Assembly (NCBI GenBank): GCA_048013815.1
Contig: CM106585.1
Span: 16,244,001-16,308,000 of the forward strand
Length of the DNA: 64,000 bases
Direction: 5' to 3'
From: Setoptus koraiensis
Lineage: Eukaryota; Animalia; Arthropoda
Shown here: positions 6,039 through 24,393 of the stretch, in pieces
Position numbering within the stretch: position 1 is the stretch's first letter
Layout: every line of letters begins with the position of its first letter
Notes under the pieces: generated by a model
The model's input: only the letters and a program-made list of their open reading frames with translations
The model's database searches: none
What the model was told of the DNA's origin: nothing
Made by a program: the position numbers and the translations under genes

Positions 6039-8117
6039 ATGGCCGATCAGCAAGAATATTGTGTGTCTAAGGCCAAGGAAAACGAACAACTGGCAGTGAG
6101 AGACTTGATCAGATATGAAGAAGAACAAGATAGCAGCAAGCCAGTTCAACCTGTGTCGTTTTGGTCAATGTCGCAGCCAGCGTCTGGCCCAGGGCTACCC
6201 AGCCTCACTACCAACAACAAATATCCGTCCTCTGTTATGGCTGTGAGCACAGAAATGACGAGCTCCGTGTTTGACAAAAGAGCCCGTCTGCCATTTCTCA
6301 TAATGTTCAACAACAACGACGACGAAAACAGAATCCAAGCCTCCATGCCCGTTGTGGGTGCCGAAGATTTAGAGAAGCCCAGGGTCAGCGAGGAACTGGC
6401 AGCCAGTCGGGCCGGACAATCGTTGCCCGCTTGCGCCATTGGTTCATCGGAACAACGCACCACTTTGAATTCAATCGCCGAGCAACCAGCAGAACAAATG
6501 ATGGACGTGACTAATCACGGCGATAGCTTGAGCGATAAAGACATGGTCAACATCACACCAGAGTCAACATGTTCCCCAGTGGTGCAAATTCAAACGCAAG
6601 AAGATGACCGGGACACACTAAACGAATTGTCGCAAACAGTCTCAAATCAGAGCCCAACATCAACCAACAAATTAAGTTTGAATCCAGGCCAGCAGACATA
6701 TTCAAGTATTGGCGACAGTTTAATAGATCTCATCATAAAACTGAGAGAAGAGAACACAATATTGGCGCAGGCGATCGATGCCAACAATCGCTACGTCAAG
6801 GAGCGCCTAGTTGAGGCGAAAGAAATCCACGAGTTGGCTCAAACGAACGAGCGACAGTTTGCGGTTGAACGGATTGAATATCAGGCTCAAATAAGTAAAT
6901 TACAACGCCAGAATACATTCTTGAGCGAACGACTGAAGAATTTAGAGGCTGCTAAGAAGCGTGGACAGTCTGGCGTGTCCGAACAAGATGCCAGTTCTGG
7001 CACGGATTCTGGCGATGCTCTGCTTAGTGCGGCCATGGATAGAATTTATCCTGTTCTCGATCACCATGACTCCTTCTCCAATCCCTATACGAGATCGGCG
7101 CCCAACAGCAGCAATGTCTCCAGCTCGAATGCTCAGCTGGACACCATACAAGAGTGCCAATCGACCACCACCACTAACGTGTCTGGCCTCAATGACGACC
7201 AAATGACCACTATCGATTATGATAGGCACAGGGTGCAACCAACGGCACCGCCAATGTCTGTGTCATCGAGTCACCACCATGGCCACCAGCATCAGCAAGA
7301 ATCGACAGATATTACCTACCCGAAAGCTCCGCAGCTAATCGAACGACCTGCTCAAGCGACGCAAACAAGCCTAGAGGATCCGATGAAACAATGCGACAAA
7401 TTGGAGCAACGACTCAATGACATTGGTAAGAAAGATTGCGAAATTACGCAACTACAAAATAGACTGAATCTTTATAGGCGAGATTATGGCTTTGAGCCGA
7501 TAGAAAAGCTAGAAGCACAACTGCAAATAGAGAAGCTCAGAAATGACATCGATCGATTGTGTCTGAAAAGGCTACAAGAACAACAACAAGGCAACAAGGG
7601 ATCGCCAACAGCATCAAGTGGGAGCACCAGCGAAAGCGATAACGGATCCGGGGCGCTGCCAGCCCAGGGTCGACATCGGCGAGGCGCGCACAAGTTGAGG
7701 CGTCATCATCGGCACCAACGTCATCATCAAGACGAGGCCGGGCCAACTGGAAGCTCAACTACTTTTTCTTCGGGTAGTTCGCCCTCGGTCATTGGTAAGC
7801 TTGGCAACCATCTTGGAAAGAAGGCCCTCAAGCATGCGGCAAAGGCAGCTAAAAAAGCCCAGATACATGCGGCCAAAATGGAGAGCGAACATGAGAATGC
7901 CATGAAGGATCATCATGTGCATTCATCGTCGAGAAGGAGAAGCAACCCTGGTTCAGATATGGTTAATGGGTTGTTCTCTACGGCAAACAAGGCCGTACTG
8001 ACAGGCTACAAGATCGCCTCTAACGTTGCCTCAAATCATGTGAATCTGGCCCTGGAAAGGCTCAATCAGCAGTACGACCAAGCTAATGCTCAGCAAGCGC
8101 CCAATAAACAGCAGTAG
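6039..8117 (+). CDS. NEMO/optineurin-like coiled-coil protein with degenerate UBAN-like region, 692 aa, single exon
   Basis: Long ORF. LREENTILAQAIDANNRYVKERL resembles the NEMO/optineurin N-terminal coiled coil. LQNRLNLYRRDYGFEPIEKLE resembles the UBAN segment. No C-terminal zinc finger. Confidence 0.65.
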   Translation: MADQQEYCVSKAKENEQLAVRDLIRYEEEQDSSKPVQPVSFWSMSQPASGPGLPSLTTNNKYPSSVMAVSTEMTSSVFDKRARLPFLIMFNNNDDENRIQASMPVVGAEDLEKPRVSEELAASRAGQSLPACAIGSSEQRTTLNSIAEQPAEQMMDVTNHGDSLSDKDMVNITPESTCSPVVQIQTQEDDRDTLNELSQTVSNQSPTSTNKLSLNPGQQTYSSIGDSLIDLIIKLREENTILAQAIDANNRYVKERLVEAKEIHELAQTNERQFAVERIEYQAQISKLQRQNTFLSERLKNLEAAKKRGQSGVSEQDASSGTDSGDALLSAAMDRIYPVLDHHDSFSNPYTRSAPNSSNVSSSNAQLDTIQECQSTTTTNVSGLNDDQMTTIDYDRHRVQPTAPPMSVSSSHHHGHQHQQESTDITYPKAPQLIERPAQATQTSLEDPMKQCDKLEQRLNDIGKKDCEITQLQNRLNLYRRDYGFEPIEKLEAQLQIEKLRNDIDRLCLKRLQEQQQGNKGSPTASSGSTSESDNGSGALPAQGRHRRGAHKLRRHHRHQRHHQDEAGPTGSSTTFSSGSSPSVIGKLGNHLGKKALKHAAKAAKKAQIHAAKMESEHENAMKDHHVHSSSRRRSNPGSDMVNGLFSTANKAVLTGYKIASNVASNHVNLALERLNQQYDQANAQQAPNKQQ

Positions 8118-8678: not shown

Positions 8679-9140
8679 CTAGCTATAAAGTCCGGCTATG
8701 TCCAATTTACGAAAGAGCTCCTTGTCGAAGTTGAGATTATCGTCATATAACAGTTCGTGCCGGATAATGGAGTCCACGTCACATCTAAGCCCCCCATCTA
8801 ATTTTCTCAAATCTATATCTATGTTGTAGTAACTACTCAAAGCGTAGTTTTGACCTTGACTAAAATGTTGCATTTTTTCATGTTGGTAGCATGGTGGTTG
8901 TTGCTGCAAAGTATTCGGTTGCTGCCTCTGTGGCATGGAGGATGGTCGCGGCCTTTTCATTGCCCTGGGTTTTTGGCCCTTGGTAGATTTGTTTGCGCTC
9001 AGGTTATTAATATATCTGGAGGTTTCGTTGTGCACCTTTGCATCTAGTACCGGCTGGCTTTTCTCATAAATCATCGCTTTCTCCACATGTTGTTCTCGTA
9101 ATTTTTGTAACCTAGAATCATTTGGAGGTTCTGTGCTCAT
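8679..9140 (-). CDS. Short (153 aa) paralog of the Mastermind-like/FOXO-TAD protein
   Basis: Intact ORF. N-terminal RLQKLREQHVEKAMIYEKSQPVLDAKVHNET and C-terminal DIDLRKLDGGLRCDVDSIIRHELLYDDNLNFD both align with the 12898-14046 protein. Confidence 0.75.
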   Translation of the reverse strand: MSTEPPNDSRLQKLREQHVEKAMIYEKSQPVLDAKVHNETSRYINNLSANKSTKGQKPRAMKRPRPSSMPQRQQPNTLQQQPPCYQHEKMQHFSQGQNYALSSYYNIDIDLRKLDGGLRCDVDSIIRHELLYDDNLNFDKELFRKLDIAGLYS

Positions 9141-12897: not shown

Positions 12898-14046
12898 TTA
12901 CATATGTACATTAACGTGTCCATTTGAGCTATCCAACTGATGAAATAGTTCATTATTGAAGTTAAGGCTTTCCTCATACGCGAGTTCGTGCCTGATAATG
13001 GAGTCCACGTCACATTCGAGTCCTCCATCTAATGAATTTAGATCTAAATCGGGCAGTATAGAGATAACAAAAGCTTGCTGTTGATGCGGACCTGAAGTAT
13101 TATTGCTCATATTGTAATGATTATTATTCATTGTATTATGAGTTGGGGGGTGCATTCGTTGCGTCGTATGTACTTGCGTTACCATAGACGTGGTGGTAGG
13201 TATTGAAGTTTGTTGTATATGGGGCCTTGTTTGATAGTGAATATTGTTATTAGTAGTAATGTTTCTATTATTGATATTTATATTTCCATTGTTGATAACA
13301 TTAACATTGCCATTGGTAGTGATGGCGTTATTGTGATGCATAATCATTTGTTGAGTTTGGTGACCTTGACTTGACAGGTGGCTATGAATTTGTTGCGGGT
13401 GTTGCTGTTGTGGAACTTGCCTATGCATCATTTGTTGATGATTTTGTTGGGACTGATTTTGGTGCGTTTGTTGTTGTTGTTGGTGGATTAGTTGGATTTG
13501 CATTTGGCTAGTAGAGTTCTGTTGTAACAGATTGTTAGATTGCATAGCATTTTGTTGTTGTTGTTGTTGTTGTTGCATAGCATTTTGTTGTTGCTGTTGT
13601 TGCATAGAATTTGGTTGTTGCATATTGTTATTTGGTTGAATAGTAGTTGGTTGCATAGCATTTATAGTTGTCATAGAGTTCTTTGGCAGTGATGGATTTG
13701 GTGGTGGTTGTTTTGGCGGTGTGGGTTGATGATTATTAATAGAGTTATTAGTGTTGACGTTGCCAGTTTGCGTCAGGGCGGTCGAAGAGGCTGATGATTG
13801 CAGTGAGGCCTGTTGTTGCCTTTTGGTTGCCCGGGGTTTTTGGCTTTTGGTTGTTTTAGTTCCATTGAGGGGATTATTCTTAAGATATCTAGCTGTTTCT
13901 TGGTGCACGCTGGCGTCTAAACTTGGCTGAGTTCTCCCATAAATGGCCGCCTTTTCCGCATGCTGGTTGCGCAATTTCTGAAACCTTTCATCAAGGTGAA
14001 TTCTTTCTTTGACATCATTGTGAGGCTCTGTGGGCATACTAGTCAT
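12898..14046 (-). CDS. Mastermind/LAG-3-like N-terminal helix + Q/N-rich linker + FOXO-type transactivation motif, 382 aa, single exon
   Basis: N-terminal LDERFQKLRNQHAEKAAIYGRTQPSLDASVHQET fits the Mastermind pattern. Poly-Q centre. C-terminal PDLDLNSLDGGLECDVDSIIRHELAYEESLNFN fits FOXO CR3. No forkhead domain. Confidence 0.8.
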   Translation of the reverse strand: MTSMPTEPHNDVKERIHLDERFQKLRNQHAEKAAIYGRTQPSLDASVHQETARYLKNNPLNGTKTTKSQKPRATKRQQQASLQSSASSTALTQTGNVNTNNSINNHQPTPPKQPPPNPSLPKNSMTTINAMQPTTIQPNNNMQQPNSMQQQQQQNAMQQQQQQQQNAMQSNNLLQQNSTSQMQIQLIHQQQQQTHQNQSQQNHQQMMHRQVPQQQHPQQIHSHLSSQGHQTQQMIMHHNNAITTNGNVNVINNGNININNRNITTNNNIHYQTRPHIQQTSIPTTTSMVTQVHTTQRMHPPTHNTMNNNHYNMSNNTSGPHQQQAFVISILPDLDLNSLDGGLECDVDSIIRHELAYEESLNFNNELFHQLDSSNGHVNVHM

Positions 14047-14181
14047 TGTGGGTGACTAACAAGATGGCCGATAGCCAGCAGAATTTATCTCGCTGTAATA
14101 TCTATTGTTTGTATAATAGGATTGTTGCTGGCTGCGTCCGTCCGTCTGTTCGTTGGTTCGTTGGTTGGTTCGTTTGTCCGC

Positions 14182-14182
<1 letters not shown>

Positions 14183-14212
<30 letters not shown>
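14183..14212. repeat. (GT)n microsatellite
   Basis: About 15 uninterrupted GT units; further CA/GT runs at ~14398-14412 and ~14747-14775. Confidence 0.9.
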
Positions 14213-14218
<6 letters not shown>

Positions 14219-15536: not shown

Positions 15537-17180
15537 TCAGTCTAATTGTACCGGACAATCAGATTCTGAAGAATGGATGCGTTGAGGTTGAATAGGTGAC
15601 TTGATTTTGTGTTCAACGACAGGCAAAGTTGACTCGACTTGGTTGAGCCAAAAATTACCACAAGATGAATGATAGTAATTATTTCCATCTATCGTGAGTA
15701 GATTATCTTCATTGGCATCATACTTGGCTGTCAGTTCCGACGTATCAACATCTAAACTGTCCGTGGTGACAGTATAGTAATTCGCAGAGCTTGACGCGGT
15801 TACACATATTGTGCAGACTTTCTCCTGAGAAACTTCCGAAGAATCATGGTTTTGTTTCGAGTCGCTACCCTCTTTGTTCTTCGACGATATTTCACTATGT
15901 AACCCGTCCATGATCGCCTCGATAAATTCGCCCTGGCCGGCTTCGTCGAAAAGATTTACTAATACGGCCCAACTTTCATTGATTGATGTCATGAGATCAT
16001 CTATAAGATGCACAAAGTTATCATTAATACGAAAATTCGAGTCCTGCTTAGTCTCTGACACCTTGATCCATATCCTTTGCGCTATGGGGTAGCATCGAGC
16101 CAGATTTTGAATAAATTTGGCACCATCGTGAGTCCTCAATGACTCTATGGAATTGTTACGTCCGTGCTGCACATTAAGTACATCAAATGTACGCTTAAAA
16201 ACAGTTTTGAGGGCGTCCATTTGTCTAGACCAGATACTTGCTATCATAGAAAACTCTTCATCGAGTTGCATCTCTTTACAATCCAAATCGAGTATACTTG
16301 TAGTTGTCTCATTACTACTATTGCAATGTTTCGATGATAATACTGATGGTGAAACCAATTGTCGATTGTCATTGTTGGTCGAAAGTGCGTCACGAGGATT
16401 GGACAATGCTAAAATTGATTTATTATTTAAAATGTTGCTTGTCTTGGTGAAATTATTATCAATACTGGGTACTTCTATGTGAATAAATGCATTGGTTGTT
16501 GCAATTTTGATTGGCCTATTGTTATAATTGGCAATTGATTTGTTGTTGCTATGTAGATTCTGTTTTTGCGTGTTAAGCTCAGCCGGTGACCGACTACTGT
16601 CATTTGAACTGTCATCGAGAAATTGAATGAGAGGCTCCTTGGTAGAGCCAAGCCCGTTTGAGTCTTCGATTTGAGGATATAGATTGGGCAACGGTGGCAC
16701 CCGTTCAGATTTGATAGCATTGAAGGGGTCTTTGATGTTTTTGCGTTGAAATAAGGCTATCAAGGCCAGCGCAAAACAGAGTTCCCTGTTGATTAGTTTG
16801 CCTGGAAATGTTTGATTAACGTGGGCCCAGATTGCGGCTAATATTTCGTGCGATAAACGACTAGTTAACAATAGTTGATAGACCCTCTCTGTGTCGGTGA
16901 GTCTATTGGGAAATTCCACCTGCGTTTGACCAGGGTAGTCATATTGAGCAATTTGAACTTGGCCTAGAACTCCATGATAAATGGCAGGCAATTGTTTAAT
17001 GGCTGCGTTGTTTCTGAGCCATGAAGGAAGATTTTTGGCCGCCTTCTCTAATTGACTCGACGAAATCTTGGGCAGCTCGATAGTGTGATTGGACAAATTC
17101 GATATTGGAACATGTTTCTTGGATGATGTAAATGCCTGCATTTCCAGTTTAGTTGATCCTTTCAATGGTGTTATGGCATC
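15537..17180 (-). CDS. SYNRG: Synergin gamma-like protein (main/last exon)
   Basis: EH-like region DTERVYQLLLTSRLSHEILAAIWAHVNQTFPGKLINRELCFALALIA and C-terminal CTIC...YHSSCGNFWLNQV match synergin gamma. Acceptor TTGTAG|GATGCC at 17181/17180; 5' exon not resolved. Confidence 0.8.
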   Translation of the reverse strand, partial: DAITPLKGSTKLEMQAFTSSKKHVPISNLSNHTIELPKISSSQLEKAAKNLPSWLRNNAAIKQLPAIYHGVLGQVQIAQYDYPGQTQVEFPNRLTDTERVYQLLLTSRLSHEILAAIWAHVNQTFPGKLINRELCFALALIALFQRKNIKDPFNAIKSERVPPLPNLYPQIEDSNGLGSTKEPLIQFLDDSSNDSSRSPAELNTQKQNLHSNNKSIANYNNRPIKIATTNAFIHIEVPSIDNNFTKTSNILNNKSILALSNPRDALSTNNDNRQLVSPSVLSSKHCNSSNETTTSILDLDCKEMQLDEEFSMIASIWSRQMDALKTVFKRTFDVLNVQHGRNNSIESLRTHDGAKFIQNLARCYPIAQRIWIKVSETKQDSNFRINDNFVHLIDDLMTSINESWAVLVNLFDEAGQGEFIEAIMDGLHSEISSKNKEGSDSKQNHDSSEVSQEKVCTICVTASSSANYYTVTTDSLDVDTSELTAKYDANEDNLLTIDGNNYYHSSCGNFWLNQVESTLPVVEHKIKSPIQPQRIHSSESDCPVQLD

Positions 17181-20100: not shown

Positions 20101-20621
20101 GAAATTATCCTACTCACACGACAAGCTGGCACAAAAAATATGCAATTGCGCTGGTAGTGCCAAATCAACTATTATTACTGCTAGTCCGTGACAATATGGT
20201 ATAACAATAGCAAGATAAAATATCTTTGATTGCTGCTCAACACTCCGAATGGAAAAAGTGATTTCAGTTTTTGATTTGAGACGATACGTTTCGACATGTT
20301 ATGTAATGAGCCAGAGATAGGTTCAACTTGAATGTAACCGCATACTAAAATCAATCCCAATTAACCGGCACTATCTTCGTGAGATCACGAGCTGTGTCCC
20401 ACATGAGCATCTTGCTATTCGCAGTGACACCAATGAACTAATGCGAAATCAATAAGAGTGTATCAAGAACCAATGATCAACTAAACGAAGCTCTGAAAAA
20501 TAATTAATCCTGCTTTGATGCAATCAGTTCAAACATTAGAACTCCCAAACAATAGTGGGGGATAAAGCGAAGCACCAGCAACAATTGAGACCACTTTAGT
20601 TAGTTTGAGGCGCCAACTAAA

Positions 20622-23600
20622 ATGATTCATCCCACGGATGTGCTGCTAACTGCCGCAGCCTTGGCCCTTCTGAACGCGGCCTGCTCGTTACACATTCAAC
20701 GGGTTTGCGCCACCAGCGACAGTGGGTCTAATCCGAGTCGAACCAATCCTATTATGGGCCAACCAGCTTACAATGTTGACCATTTCGAACTGACAAGAGA
20801 GAAAAGAATATCGGAGGCAAATAACGAACCTTTAGATTATATTCAAAGTAATAAGATTGATGTCGATAGTGAGTCACTGCAGCAAATACAAAATAGAGCT
20901 GACGCGCCAAGATTTCACAACAAAACACGCCATTTTTTGGCAAACATAAAAAAGAATATCAATCAAGCCCAAACCAAGATAAAAAATACAAACAACAACA
21001 ACAAATCGTCAGAACCCGCACGTAACACCAACAGTATAGTTGGAAGAAATCAAAACGCCGATGACAATAATTCAAGTGCACCAAACCTTTACTCCTACTA
21101 CGCAAAAAAAGACAATGATAGCCACAACGGCACAAACAATGACAATCACCATTTTAAGGTGATCGGCCAACAAGATGGTGTCGGGGTGACCGGACGCGAG
21201 ATACAAATTAGTTTAAGGAATGCACCGAGAGCGAGTGATAGCCGATCTAATTCAACCAGATTATCACATACTAGCAACGACTCTAATGTAAAGTCAAATA
21301 GCAGTCCATCGTTGTTCCTACTAAATTATAAGTCACATTTGCAAGATAGGGCCCCCACCAGAAATCAATTAGCGTCAGAGCTGGGTGCCTCGGAACAACA
21401 ACAACCGCCACCATCGACACTTGCTCCAAACAACAACCACAATAATAACAGACAATTGTTTTTGAATAACAATAACAACAACAACAATAATCTTCAACAA
21501 CAACAACTGCTGCAGCAGCGACAGCCCTTCAATCTGGGACTGCTTCCTGGGCAGCAACAAGCCAATCAGCAACAACAATATCAAAATCCTTTCCTCGGTC
21601 CATTGCAACTTTTAACTGCACCTCTACAGGCTGCCGCGCCATTCCTGCCACAATTACAAACAAATCAATATGCACCTCAAAATAATCAAAATCTTAACAA
21701 CAATCCTAGAAACAACAACAACAATCTAGCCAATAGACAAAATTATTCCCCAACAACACATAATAGGGGATCTTCACAATTGAGCAACAACAACATTCGA
21801 AATGGCAACGCGCAACAACAACAGCCTCTTAATGGAAATGGACAAATTAATCCAACGAATCAAATTAGCAATTCTCCTCCCACTTTACAATCTTTGTACC
21901 AGCAGCTGCCATTATATCAAGCTTTGTTAGCCGCTAGANNNNNNNNNNNNNNNNNNNNNNNNNNNNNNNNNNNNNNNNNNNNNNNNNNNNNNNNNNNNNN
22001 NNNNNNNNNNNNNNNNNNNNNNNNNNNNNNNNNNNNNNNNNNNNNNNNNNNNNNNNNNNNNNNNNNNNNNNNNNNNNNNNNNNNNNNNNNNNNNNNNNNN
22101 NNNNNNNNNNNNNNNNNNNNNNNNNNNNNNNNNNNNNNNNNNNNNNNNNNNNNNNNNNNNNNNNNNNNNNNNNNNNNNNNNNNNNNNNNNNNNNNNNNNN
22201 NNNNNNNNNNNNNNNNNNNNNNNNNNNNNNNNNNNNNNNNNNNNNNNNNNNNNNNNNNNNNNNNNNNNNNNNNNNNNNNNNNNNNNNNNNNNNNNNNNNN
22301 NNNNNNNNNNNNNNNNNNNNNNNNNNNNNNNNNNNNNNNNNNNNNNNNNNNNNNNNNNNNNNNNNNNNNNNNNNNNNNNNNNNNNNNNNNNNNNNNNNNN
22401 NNNNNNNNNNNNNNNNNNNNNNNNNNNNNNNNNNNNNNATCAAAATCTTAACAACAATCCTAGAAACAACAACAACAATCTAGCCAATAGACAAAATTAT
22501 TCCCCAACAACACATAATAGGGGATCTTCACAATTGAGCAACAACAACATTCGAAATGGCAACGCGCAACAACAACAGCCTCTTAATGGAAATGGACAAA
22601 TTAATCCAACGAATCAAATTAGCAATTCTCCTCCCACTTTACAATCTTTGTACCAGCAGCTGCCATTATATCAAGCTTTGTTAGCCGCTAGACAAAGACA
22701 GATGGCTCTGTTGGCCGAGAGACAGCGCCAACAACAACTAATTCAACAACATAATGGTCAATCACAAGGTAAGTCATGATTTCATTATTCCACCATCAAT
22801 GACATATTAGAATGTTAACTCCTTCGATCAAGCTTGTTTAATTATCCAATATTTATATAACCCATTTTTTACTTTTGTACATTAATGATTCGATCCATAG
22901 GTGTCACTGGGAACAATCAACGCTTTTCTAATCAACAGATTCCCAATGCTCATGGAATCAATAGATTTACCCCCAATAATGCACCATACGCAGGAACAAC
23001 AGGAAATAATCAGCAACAACAGCAGCAGCCGCAACAGCAACAGAAGCGTCCAAATTCAAACAATATCTTAGATCAGGTATTCGATGATAACTATAAACCC
23101 AACAATAACCAGCCCACTGCAAATAATAGTGGTGCAAACCAGAACAGCAACAACCAAAATCAAGTCAATCCGCATTCGAACAATCACAACCAAGCCAACG
23201 CTAACTCCAACTACGAACCGCAGCCCAATTTTGATGACGATGCCAACAATGGATCAGCGAAAGGAACAAGTGGCAACAAGGAGGAGGCTGGCACAAATGA
23301 TGGTGAGAATTCTAAAGATAACGGAGCTGGGCAAGACGATCAAGGTAATCAGGGAGATAACGGGGCCGGAGATCAAGACGATCCCGATATAAAGAACTTC
23401 CAAAATTTAGCCGGAAACGGTGACTTTCCAGCTGATGTCTTTCCACCTGGGATATTGACCGACAGTGACATCAAAGAGATACGTAAGCAACAGGAAGAGC
23501 AAAGTCGCAAACAAGAAGAAGAGGAAAGGCGTAAGCAGGAGGAGGCTCAGCAAAATGGCCAAGAGCAAGCGCCGCCGGCTAATCAGCAGGAGCAACCCAA

Positions 23601-24393
23601 TCAAAATCAACAACTTGGGAATGCATTCAATAATCAATTACAACAACCAAATCAAAATCAACAACTTGGGAATACATTCAATAATCAATTACAACAACCC
23701 AATCAATATCAACAACATGGGAATTCATTCAATAATCACTTACAACAACCCAATCAATATCAACAACATGGGAATTCATTCAATAATCACTTACAACAAC
23801 CCAATGTCGTAGGTGGTCTTCAGCCGTTCAATCAAAATGTTGGTGCTAACAACAATCAACAAAACGGGTTCCAGCAGAATGGTGGACAAGATCTAAATGG
23901 ATTCAATAATAATAACTTTGCTGGTGGCGCCCCACGAGGAGGTTCATTAGACAATACCTCAAGACAAAATGGATTCGCACAGAACAACCTTCCCAATGGT
24001 GGGTCGCCCCAACAACAGCCAGTTCAACCCAATCTGACGGATAATCACAACAACAATGAGGAAAAGAGCAATCCAGGGGATGGAGCAGACAATCAAGATG
24101 AGAATCCACAAAATGAAAACAATGACGAGAGTCCTCCTGAGAGAGAAACCAACGACGGCGAAGGAGATGAAAATAGCGACCAACCTGAAGAGCAACCTGA
24201 CCAAGATCAACCGTCTGCTGCCGCTTTGACGACAGCAGTCAAATTGAAGCAAGAGGAACCTAAAAATAATCGAGCTCAAACGACTGCCAAAGAGAATAAA
24301 CCTAATAGGCCCTATAAGGCGGGAGTCGAATATTCTTCTAACGAGCAAAGTCACAAACCAATTTCGGCAGTCAATGTGACAGAATTAAAATGA
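20622..24393 (+). CDS. Secreted Asn/Gln-rich low-complexity protein, 2 exons, ~961 aa if the gap overlap is collapsed
   Basis: Signal-peptide-like MIHPTDVLLTAAALALLNAACS. Exon 1 is 20622-21938 joined to 22693-22768; intron 22769-22900 (GTAAGT..CCATAG, phase 1 on both sides); exon 2 is 22901-24393; 2886 nt in frame. Confidence 0.75.
21685..22692 (+). repeat. 254-bp exact direct duplication flanking the gap (21685-21938 = 22439-22692)
   Basis: Both copies run from ATCAAAATCTTAAC to GCCGCTAGA and abut the N run. Confidence 0.9.
21939..22438. other. Assembly gap (500 N)
   Basis: Run of N from 21939 to 22438. Confidence 1.
23593..23805 (+). repeat. 51-bp (17-aa) coding tandem repeat, ~4.2 copies (QPNQNQQLGNAFNNQLQ)
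   Basis: Units start at 23593, 23644, 23695, 23746 and 23797. Confidence 0.9.

Follow-up and report, generated by a model that had tools for sequence, protein, structure and literature searches.

The window analyzed here, meaning the whole 64-kb stretch (64,000 nucleotides) of Setoptus koraiensis DNA from contig CM106585.1, harbors a complete, single-exon ATG-to-stop open reading frame (ORF) of 382 amino acids plus stop codon at 12898-14046, with the stop codon at 12898-12900. The ORF had been noticed at this position and length in a sequence-only reading of the DNA, which did not give the strand; it is the minus strand. An in-frame TAG lies three codons 5' of the ATG, and the MTS... start is common to the relatives P0001, P0004, P0007, and P0010 discussed below. 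From N to C terminus, the protein comprises a conserved N module (aa 10-78; 13813-14019; 99 bits against a family hidden Markov model, HMM) consisting of a predicted helix and a basic stretch, a Q/N-rich disordered linker (aa 79-328; 13063-13812; pLDDT < 50), and a C module (aa 329-375; 12922-13062) of the FOXO CR3 transactivation-domain type. The basic stretch, KTTKSQKPRATKR (aa 64-76; 13819-13857), is a likely nuclear localization signal. Both peptides quoted in the sequence-only reading can be located in the protein: aa 18-51 read LDERFQKLRNQH...HQET, and aa 333-364 read DLDLNSLDGGLECDVDSIIRHELAYEESLNFN. The poly-Q/N middle that this reading described is evident from the composition of the central 250 residues (23% Q and 17% N). 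In the AF2 model of the 382-aa protein, everything outside the N helix and the C module is disordered.

A second, closely spaced gene of the same type, encoding a 153-aa "mini" paralogue, is found 3.8 kb away on the same strand (8679-9140). It harbors an N module (8946-9119), a FOXO-TAD match (8700-8831; 28.7 bits), and the basic stretch, with a linker of only ≈40 aa; an RPRPSS (AKT-like) site at aa 63 of this paralogue is absent from the 382-aa copy. The window as a whole is intron-poor and gene-dense, in keeping with what has been published for an eriophyoid genome, where 83.7% of the genes lack introns (PMC7738191). Long single-exon ORFs neighbor the two copies at 15540-17180 (minus strand), 6039-8117 (plus strand), and 20604-24390 (plus strand), and one of the neighboring ORFs encodes an EH-domain protein (23.5 bits), while others, of 692, 444, and 510 aa, are Q/S-rich and match no Pfam family. 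A 500-N assembly gap at 21939-22438 breaks a long plus-strand ORF (20604-22448), and a (CA)n microsatellite is found at 14170-14215, in the presumed 5' region of the 382-aa ORF gene.

Exact database look-ups of the two window proteins returned no record, and a phmmer search of the PDB with the full 382-aa ORF returned no match. Four deep poly-A/oligo-dT RNA-seq runs placed 0 reads, including on the downstream enoyl-CoA hydratase gene; these runs carry the same species label as a DNA run in which 93% of the words of the gene occur, and the label probably denotes the host or substrate organism rather than the mite. No RNA run with more than 10% of the words of the gene was found in the run search.

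The strongest signal in the protein is at its C terminus. The Pfam FOXO-TAD family (PF16676) matches aa 333-364 (12955-13050) of the 382-aa ORF with 38.6 bits and an E value of 1.5e-9 (cutoff 27.4), and the resemblance to FOXO CR3 that had been proposed from the letters is thus borne out far beyond chance. The same match is above the Pfam cutoff in 16 of 16 family members. When the C module is compared with the TADs of forkhead-bearing FOXOs, a set defined as proteins with a real forkhead domain or the flanking RRRAxSM region, identity reaches 82% (28/34), which is as high as that among FOXO TADs themselves. AF2 places helices at aa 347-360 and 365-372. The ΦXXΦΦ motif of the module is VDSII (aa 347-351; 12994-13008), and Cys345 (13012-13014) occupies the position of C481 in FOXO4. 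CR3 of FOXO binds CBP-KIX through the ΦXXΦΦ motif, with a nearby Cys providing a redox-dependent link to CBP/p300, and also binds the forkhead domain of FOXO itself (PMC12698673). At the level of amino acid sequence, homology of the C module to FOXO CR3 can be regarded as established.

To place the 382-aa ORF in the context of related proteins, we carried out searches with its separate parts and with a profile of both modules. A word-indexed search with aa 1-100 yielded a sole relative, P0001 (367 aa, E 2.6e-9), which carries matches to both FOXO-TAD and MamL-1 (PF09596), the Pfam family of the Mastermind N-terminal helix; a search of the same kind with the last 61 aa gave no match. A two-module profile, from which the poly-Q linker was left out, was run exhaustively against 1.84 billion representatives and gave 55 matches, 13 of which (216-447 aa) match both modules. 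The remaining matches are to the C module only and correspond to true FOXOs or FOXO fragments, together with the family fragment P0015 and the protein P0017. A C motif that is a general feature of arthropod Mastermind had been named at the outset as an observation that would speak against a chimera, and no protein longer than 634 aa with this motif is found among the 55 matches, so that the motif is not one that long arthropod Mastermind proteins carry in general.

The resulting family comprises ≈15 proteins of 216 to 447 aa at the 50%-identity level, in addition to the 153-aa tandem paralogue, and all share one plan, in which the N-terminal helix and the basic stretch are joined through a Q/N-rich linker to a FOXO-TAD. 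The linker is variable in both length and sequence, cannot be aligned across the family, and is nearly gone in the 153-aa paralogue. Neither of the MAML activation domains TAD1 (PF20802) and TAD2 (PF20801) is matched in the 16 members. All family members derive from raw Logan, ENA, or JGI assemblies, and cluster look-ups returned no database name for any of them. The claim of a chimera made from the sequence alone thus stands as regards the two-module architecture but not as a one-off, since the 382-aa ORF is a divergent member of a conserved family. This family is probably lineage-restricted and from acariform (eriophyoid-type) mites. In L002 (9577-11385) and L003 (10001-12075), a Brix-domain gene in convergent orientation comes after the family gene, and genes for UQCC2/CBP6 and DnaJ lie close by. 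Neither the window nor L005 shows this Brix microsynteny. P0017 (L004, 117-1058; JGI 3300030743) is a singleton of 313 aa on an mRNA-sized contig, and a word-indexed search with its N part returned only P0017 itself. Its FOXO-TAD is very FOXO-like (59.6 bits), its MamL-1 match, over profile positions 6-54, is weak (18.6 bits), and the H-x6-Y-x4-P pattern described below is missing; from these features, P0017 may hint that the two-module architecture is older or of more than one origin.

FOXO-TAD is usually found at the C terminus of FOXO proteins, and the 382-aa ORF could on these grounds be the 3'-terminal exon of a conventional FOXO gene, with the forkhead exons upstream or in an assembly gap; the AG of the TAG 9 nt before the ATG could act as a splice acceptor, and the window does contain the 500-N gap. 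This explanation is at odds with the gene content of the window. An HMM of the forkhead domain, derived from six true FOXOs, gave a best E value of 1.4 against the six frames of the 64-kb window, with no forkhead-like segment in any frame, and the gene for the EH-domain protein, the first one upstream in the same orientation, lies between the ORF and the gap. The relatives have the same stand-alone character: those in L002, L003, and L005 are single ORFs wedged between unrelated genes, in L003 only 129 nt from a divergent neighbor, and those in L001 and L004 are stand-alone single ORFs on mRNA-sized contigs. In-frame stops are found 9 to 31 codons 5' of the conserved start in the relatives, the MTS... 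start is itself conserved, and nothing in FOXOs corresponds to the N module. Furthermore, Pfam Forkhead is matched neither in the 382-aa ORF nor in its relatives, and, unlike FOXO, the 382-aa copy has no match to FOXO_KIX_bdg (CR2C), no N-terminal FOXO regions, no RRRAxSM basic region, and no AKT/14-3-3-type R.R..[ST] site. The absence of a forkhead reported in the sequence-only reading therefore holds for the window, with relatives that stand alone in four other contexts, and an upstream forkhead exon spliced into the ORF, which that reading had named as contrary evidence, is likewise found nowhere in the window, with an in-frame stop three codons upstream. An origin as a FOXO exon is very improbable and effectively refuted, and we treat the ORF as a gene in its own right.

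The N module gives the weaker signal of the two. AF2 predicts a long α-helix at aa 8-57 (13876-14025; pLDDT 84-94), the proposed Mastermind-type docking helix, in a prediction made with the family alignment and not a solved structure. When the N modules of the family are scanned alone, 12 of 15 match MamL-1 (best E 2.5e-7), which is the only family that recurs among the N-module Pfam matches. All 10 N modules tested singly match it in one register (profile ≈8-45 of 58) with 13 to 27 bits. P0001, P0002, P0005, and P0007 exceed the MamL-1 gathering score of 25 (28.6, 26.1, 26.8, and 26.4 bits, respectively), and most family members score below it (13-23 bits). The N module of the 382-aa copy gives no match to MamL-1 or any other Pfam family at E ≤ 10, whether scanned as the full ORF, as aa 1-100, or as aa 10-78; this ORF is homologous to the relatives that do match, with an E value of 2.6e-9 to P0001 and 99 bits against the family HMM. 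Profile or structural support for the N-terminal helix had been set beforehand as a test of the proposal, and both are found, in the MamL-1 matches of the family and in the AF2 helix.

A comparison with human MAML1 provides residue-level detail. MAML1 (2f8x_M) ranks second of 177,635 PDB sequences when these are searched with the family N-module profiles, with an E value of 0.73, or 0.08 with a tight-group profile, neither of which is significant, and an equal score is reached by a dynein light chain, an unrelated coiled-coil protein; we therefore set this match aside as stand-alone proof. The alignment of MAML1 and the N module follows the pattern ER.R.R...R.HH...Y....P, within which the R-x2-H-x6-Y-x4-P spacing is identical in the MAML1 PDB fragment, the 382-aa ORF, the 153-aa copy, and 13 relatives. 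Pro41 (13924-13926) aligns with the proline that closes the aligned MAML1 stretch, and the MAML1-like spacing with a conserved proline, as first noted from the letters, is thus confirmed. The 382-aa and 153-aa copies lack the ER..R helix start and one His of the HH pair, all near-invariant in the relatives, and docking by the window copies may be altered as a result. Language-model neighbors of the N part are Mastermind/MamL-1 clusters (P0004, 0.87; 382-aa copy, 0.80) and those of the whole protein are Mastermind/MAML clusters, which we take as a lead only. Residues 8-76 of MAML are known to dock as a long kinked helix across CSL-ANK, which requires both partners (PMC12318201). The Mastermind likeness ascribed to the N terminus thus holds for 12 of the 15 family N modules but fails for the 382-aa copy when scanned by itself, with no Pfam match, and is marginal with respect to human MAML1. 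We consider the N module probably homologous to MamL-1.

The same observations are compatible, at lower probability, with a forkhead-less FOXO-TAD protein unrelated to Notch, encoded by a gene that is FOXO-derived or that captured CR3. The N helix would then be Mastermind-like by convergence, which is within reach of a single amphipathic basic helix, and would serve another partner, or the protein would be a free module that titrates CBP/p300 or competes with FOXO. Such a reading draws on the disparity between the modules, with 38 to 43 bits for the C module versus 13 to 28 bits for the N module, on the missing Pfam match in the N module of the 382-aa copy, and on the marginal PDB match to MAML1, level with a coiled-coil protein. 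It also draws on the true FOXOs (P0018-P0054), in which the region after RRRAxSM harbors a post-forkhead basic helix, KYEKKRGRVKKKVEALR, that is superficially like KYDEAERVRQRMDGLRKHH of the family and ERLRRRIELCRRHH of Mastermind. A derivation of the N module from this FOXO helix was considered and rejected, as hhalign returns a probability of 1.4% over 12 columns. Convergence is further countered by MamL-1 as the sole recurrent family, always in register, by language-model neighbors that are Mastermind rather than FOXO, and by the H-x6-Y-x4-P spacing common with MAML1. We regard a protein unrelated to Notch as an unlikely explanation and a Mastermind-type N module as the better one; on sequence grounds, an architecture of a MamL-1-type helix and a FOXO CR3 without a DNA-binding domain is supported.

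The two copies in the window allow an estimate of selection on each module. They pair as sisters (support 99/96) and share a long branch (0.96), the 153-aa paralogue being the faster-evolving copy (terminal branch 0.73), and 11 relatives are nearly invariant in both modules. Between the window paralogues, dN/dS is 0.17 in the N module and 0.14 in the C module; with dS ≈1.5, close to saturation, these values can be taken only as approximate but are clearly less than 1. At a dN/dS of about 0.15, the N and C modules alike evolve under purifying selection, and both copies are thus old and maintained. That the ORF is spurious, a product of low-complexity DNA, or that it belongs to a pseudogene in decay could be suspected from the two thirds of the ORF that are Q/N-rich and of low complexity, and from an ORF known from genomic DNA alone. 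Such an origin fits neither the conservation of the end modules across at least 15 divergent relatives, between which the linker is free to vary, nor the low dN/dS and the intact frame; its probability is negligible, and we consider it effectively refuted.

Judged from their sequences, the window copies are the most divergent members of the family, and their docking properties may be modified. They could be rapidly evolving paralogues with a shifted function, acting for instance as weaker or competing modulators of the complex, with a canonical family member or a canonical long Mastermind elsewhere in the genome performing the main job. The long branch of the window copies beside 11 nearly invariant relatives speaks for such a shift, as do the loss of the first turns of the helix in both copies and the absence at their locus of the Brix-gene synteny of L002 and L003. 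A distant species could account equally well for the long branch, purifying selection persists on both modules, and the word search with the N part returned only P0001, with no closer copy known. A functional shift of this kind is possible, if rather doubtful, and we retain for the 382-aa protein the reading as a Mastermind-type co-activator.

The known systems that the family most resembles differ from it in distinct ways. Like Mastermind/MAML1-3 (Drosophila Mam and human MAML), the family has at its N terminus a basic helix of ≈50 residues that follows the ER.R.R...R.HH...Y....P pattern, a basic stretch after the helix followed by a long Q-rich disordered region, and no DNA-binding domain. 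Unlike these proteins, its members are 3 to 10 times shorter (153-447 aa versus roughly 1000-1600 aa) and end in FOXO CR3 in place of any TAD1 or TAD2 match, and their MamL-1 scores lie around or under the gathering score. A precedent for a short, highly diverged Mastermind is LAG-3/SEL-8 of Caenorhabditis elegans, a small (about 490 aa), Q-rich, and functional Mastermind. The structure of the LAG-3 ternary complex is available as 2fo1 (cited in PMC12318201). LAG-3 was not recovered in searches with the mite family and, unlike the latter, has no FOXO-TAD. Dominant-negative MAML1 (residues 13-74) and minimal Mastermind constructs are engineered laboratory proteins. The 153-aa paralogue resembles the minimal MAML1 constructs in having a docking helix and a short tail; unlike dominant-negative MAML1, the natural mite protein keeps an activation motif and is for this reason expected to activate rather than block.

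The reading that we favor, with moderate confidence, is that the 382-aa protein functions as a stand-alone nuclear Mastermind-type co-activator that would dock on CSL-NICD and recruit CBP/p300. The N helix would dock, like the MAML1 helix, in the groove that CSL/Su(H) forms with the ANK domain of Notch, the basic stretch would provide nuclear import, and the CR3 module would recruit CBP/p300 through its ΦXXΦΦ motif, taking the place of the canonical Mastermind TAD1 and TAD2 that are absent from the family. In FOXO, CR3 has its own forkhead as a partner; this partner is missing in the mite protein, and, because no forkhead domain binds CR3 in cis, the motif would be permanently exposed and unrestrained. 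A bolder proposal, which we put forward tentatively and hold to be less probable, is that the canonical Mastermind of 1000+ aa has been replaced outright in this lineage by the mini chimera, such that Notch targets would be switched on via the FOXO CR3-CBP/p300 contact, including its redox-sensitive Cys. The 153-aa paralogue would then be the smallest natural Mastermind known, with a docking helix and any CBP-recruiting motif being sufficient.

The sequence-only reading knew of no described protein with this architecture, and we find none in the searchable literature or among named database entries. No description of Mastermind or MamL-1 together with a FOXO TAD, or of Mastermind in these mites, was found in the searchable literature, and the eriophyoid (Aculops) genome paper and its supplements contain no mention of Mastermind or FOXO (PMC7738191). 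What is new is the combination of a MamL-1-type helix with a FOXO CR3; both modules and their presumed logic were already known.

Among the core components of Notch signaling, Mastermind is the least conserved, and what portion of its roughly 1000-residue body is required is a matter of debate. If the favored reading is true, the mite family would represent a natural domain swap in which the docking helix was kept and the native activation regions were exchanged for a FOXO motif. This would support the view of Mastermind as a modular adaptor composed of a docking helix and a CBP/p300 recruiter, and would document a short disordered activation motif that moved between unrelated families of regulators. 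The 153-aa copy would provide a ready-made minimal construct. Finally, the family represents a clear case of regulatory-protein miniaturization in a genome-reduced animal.
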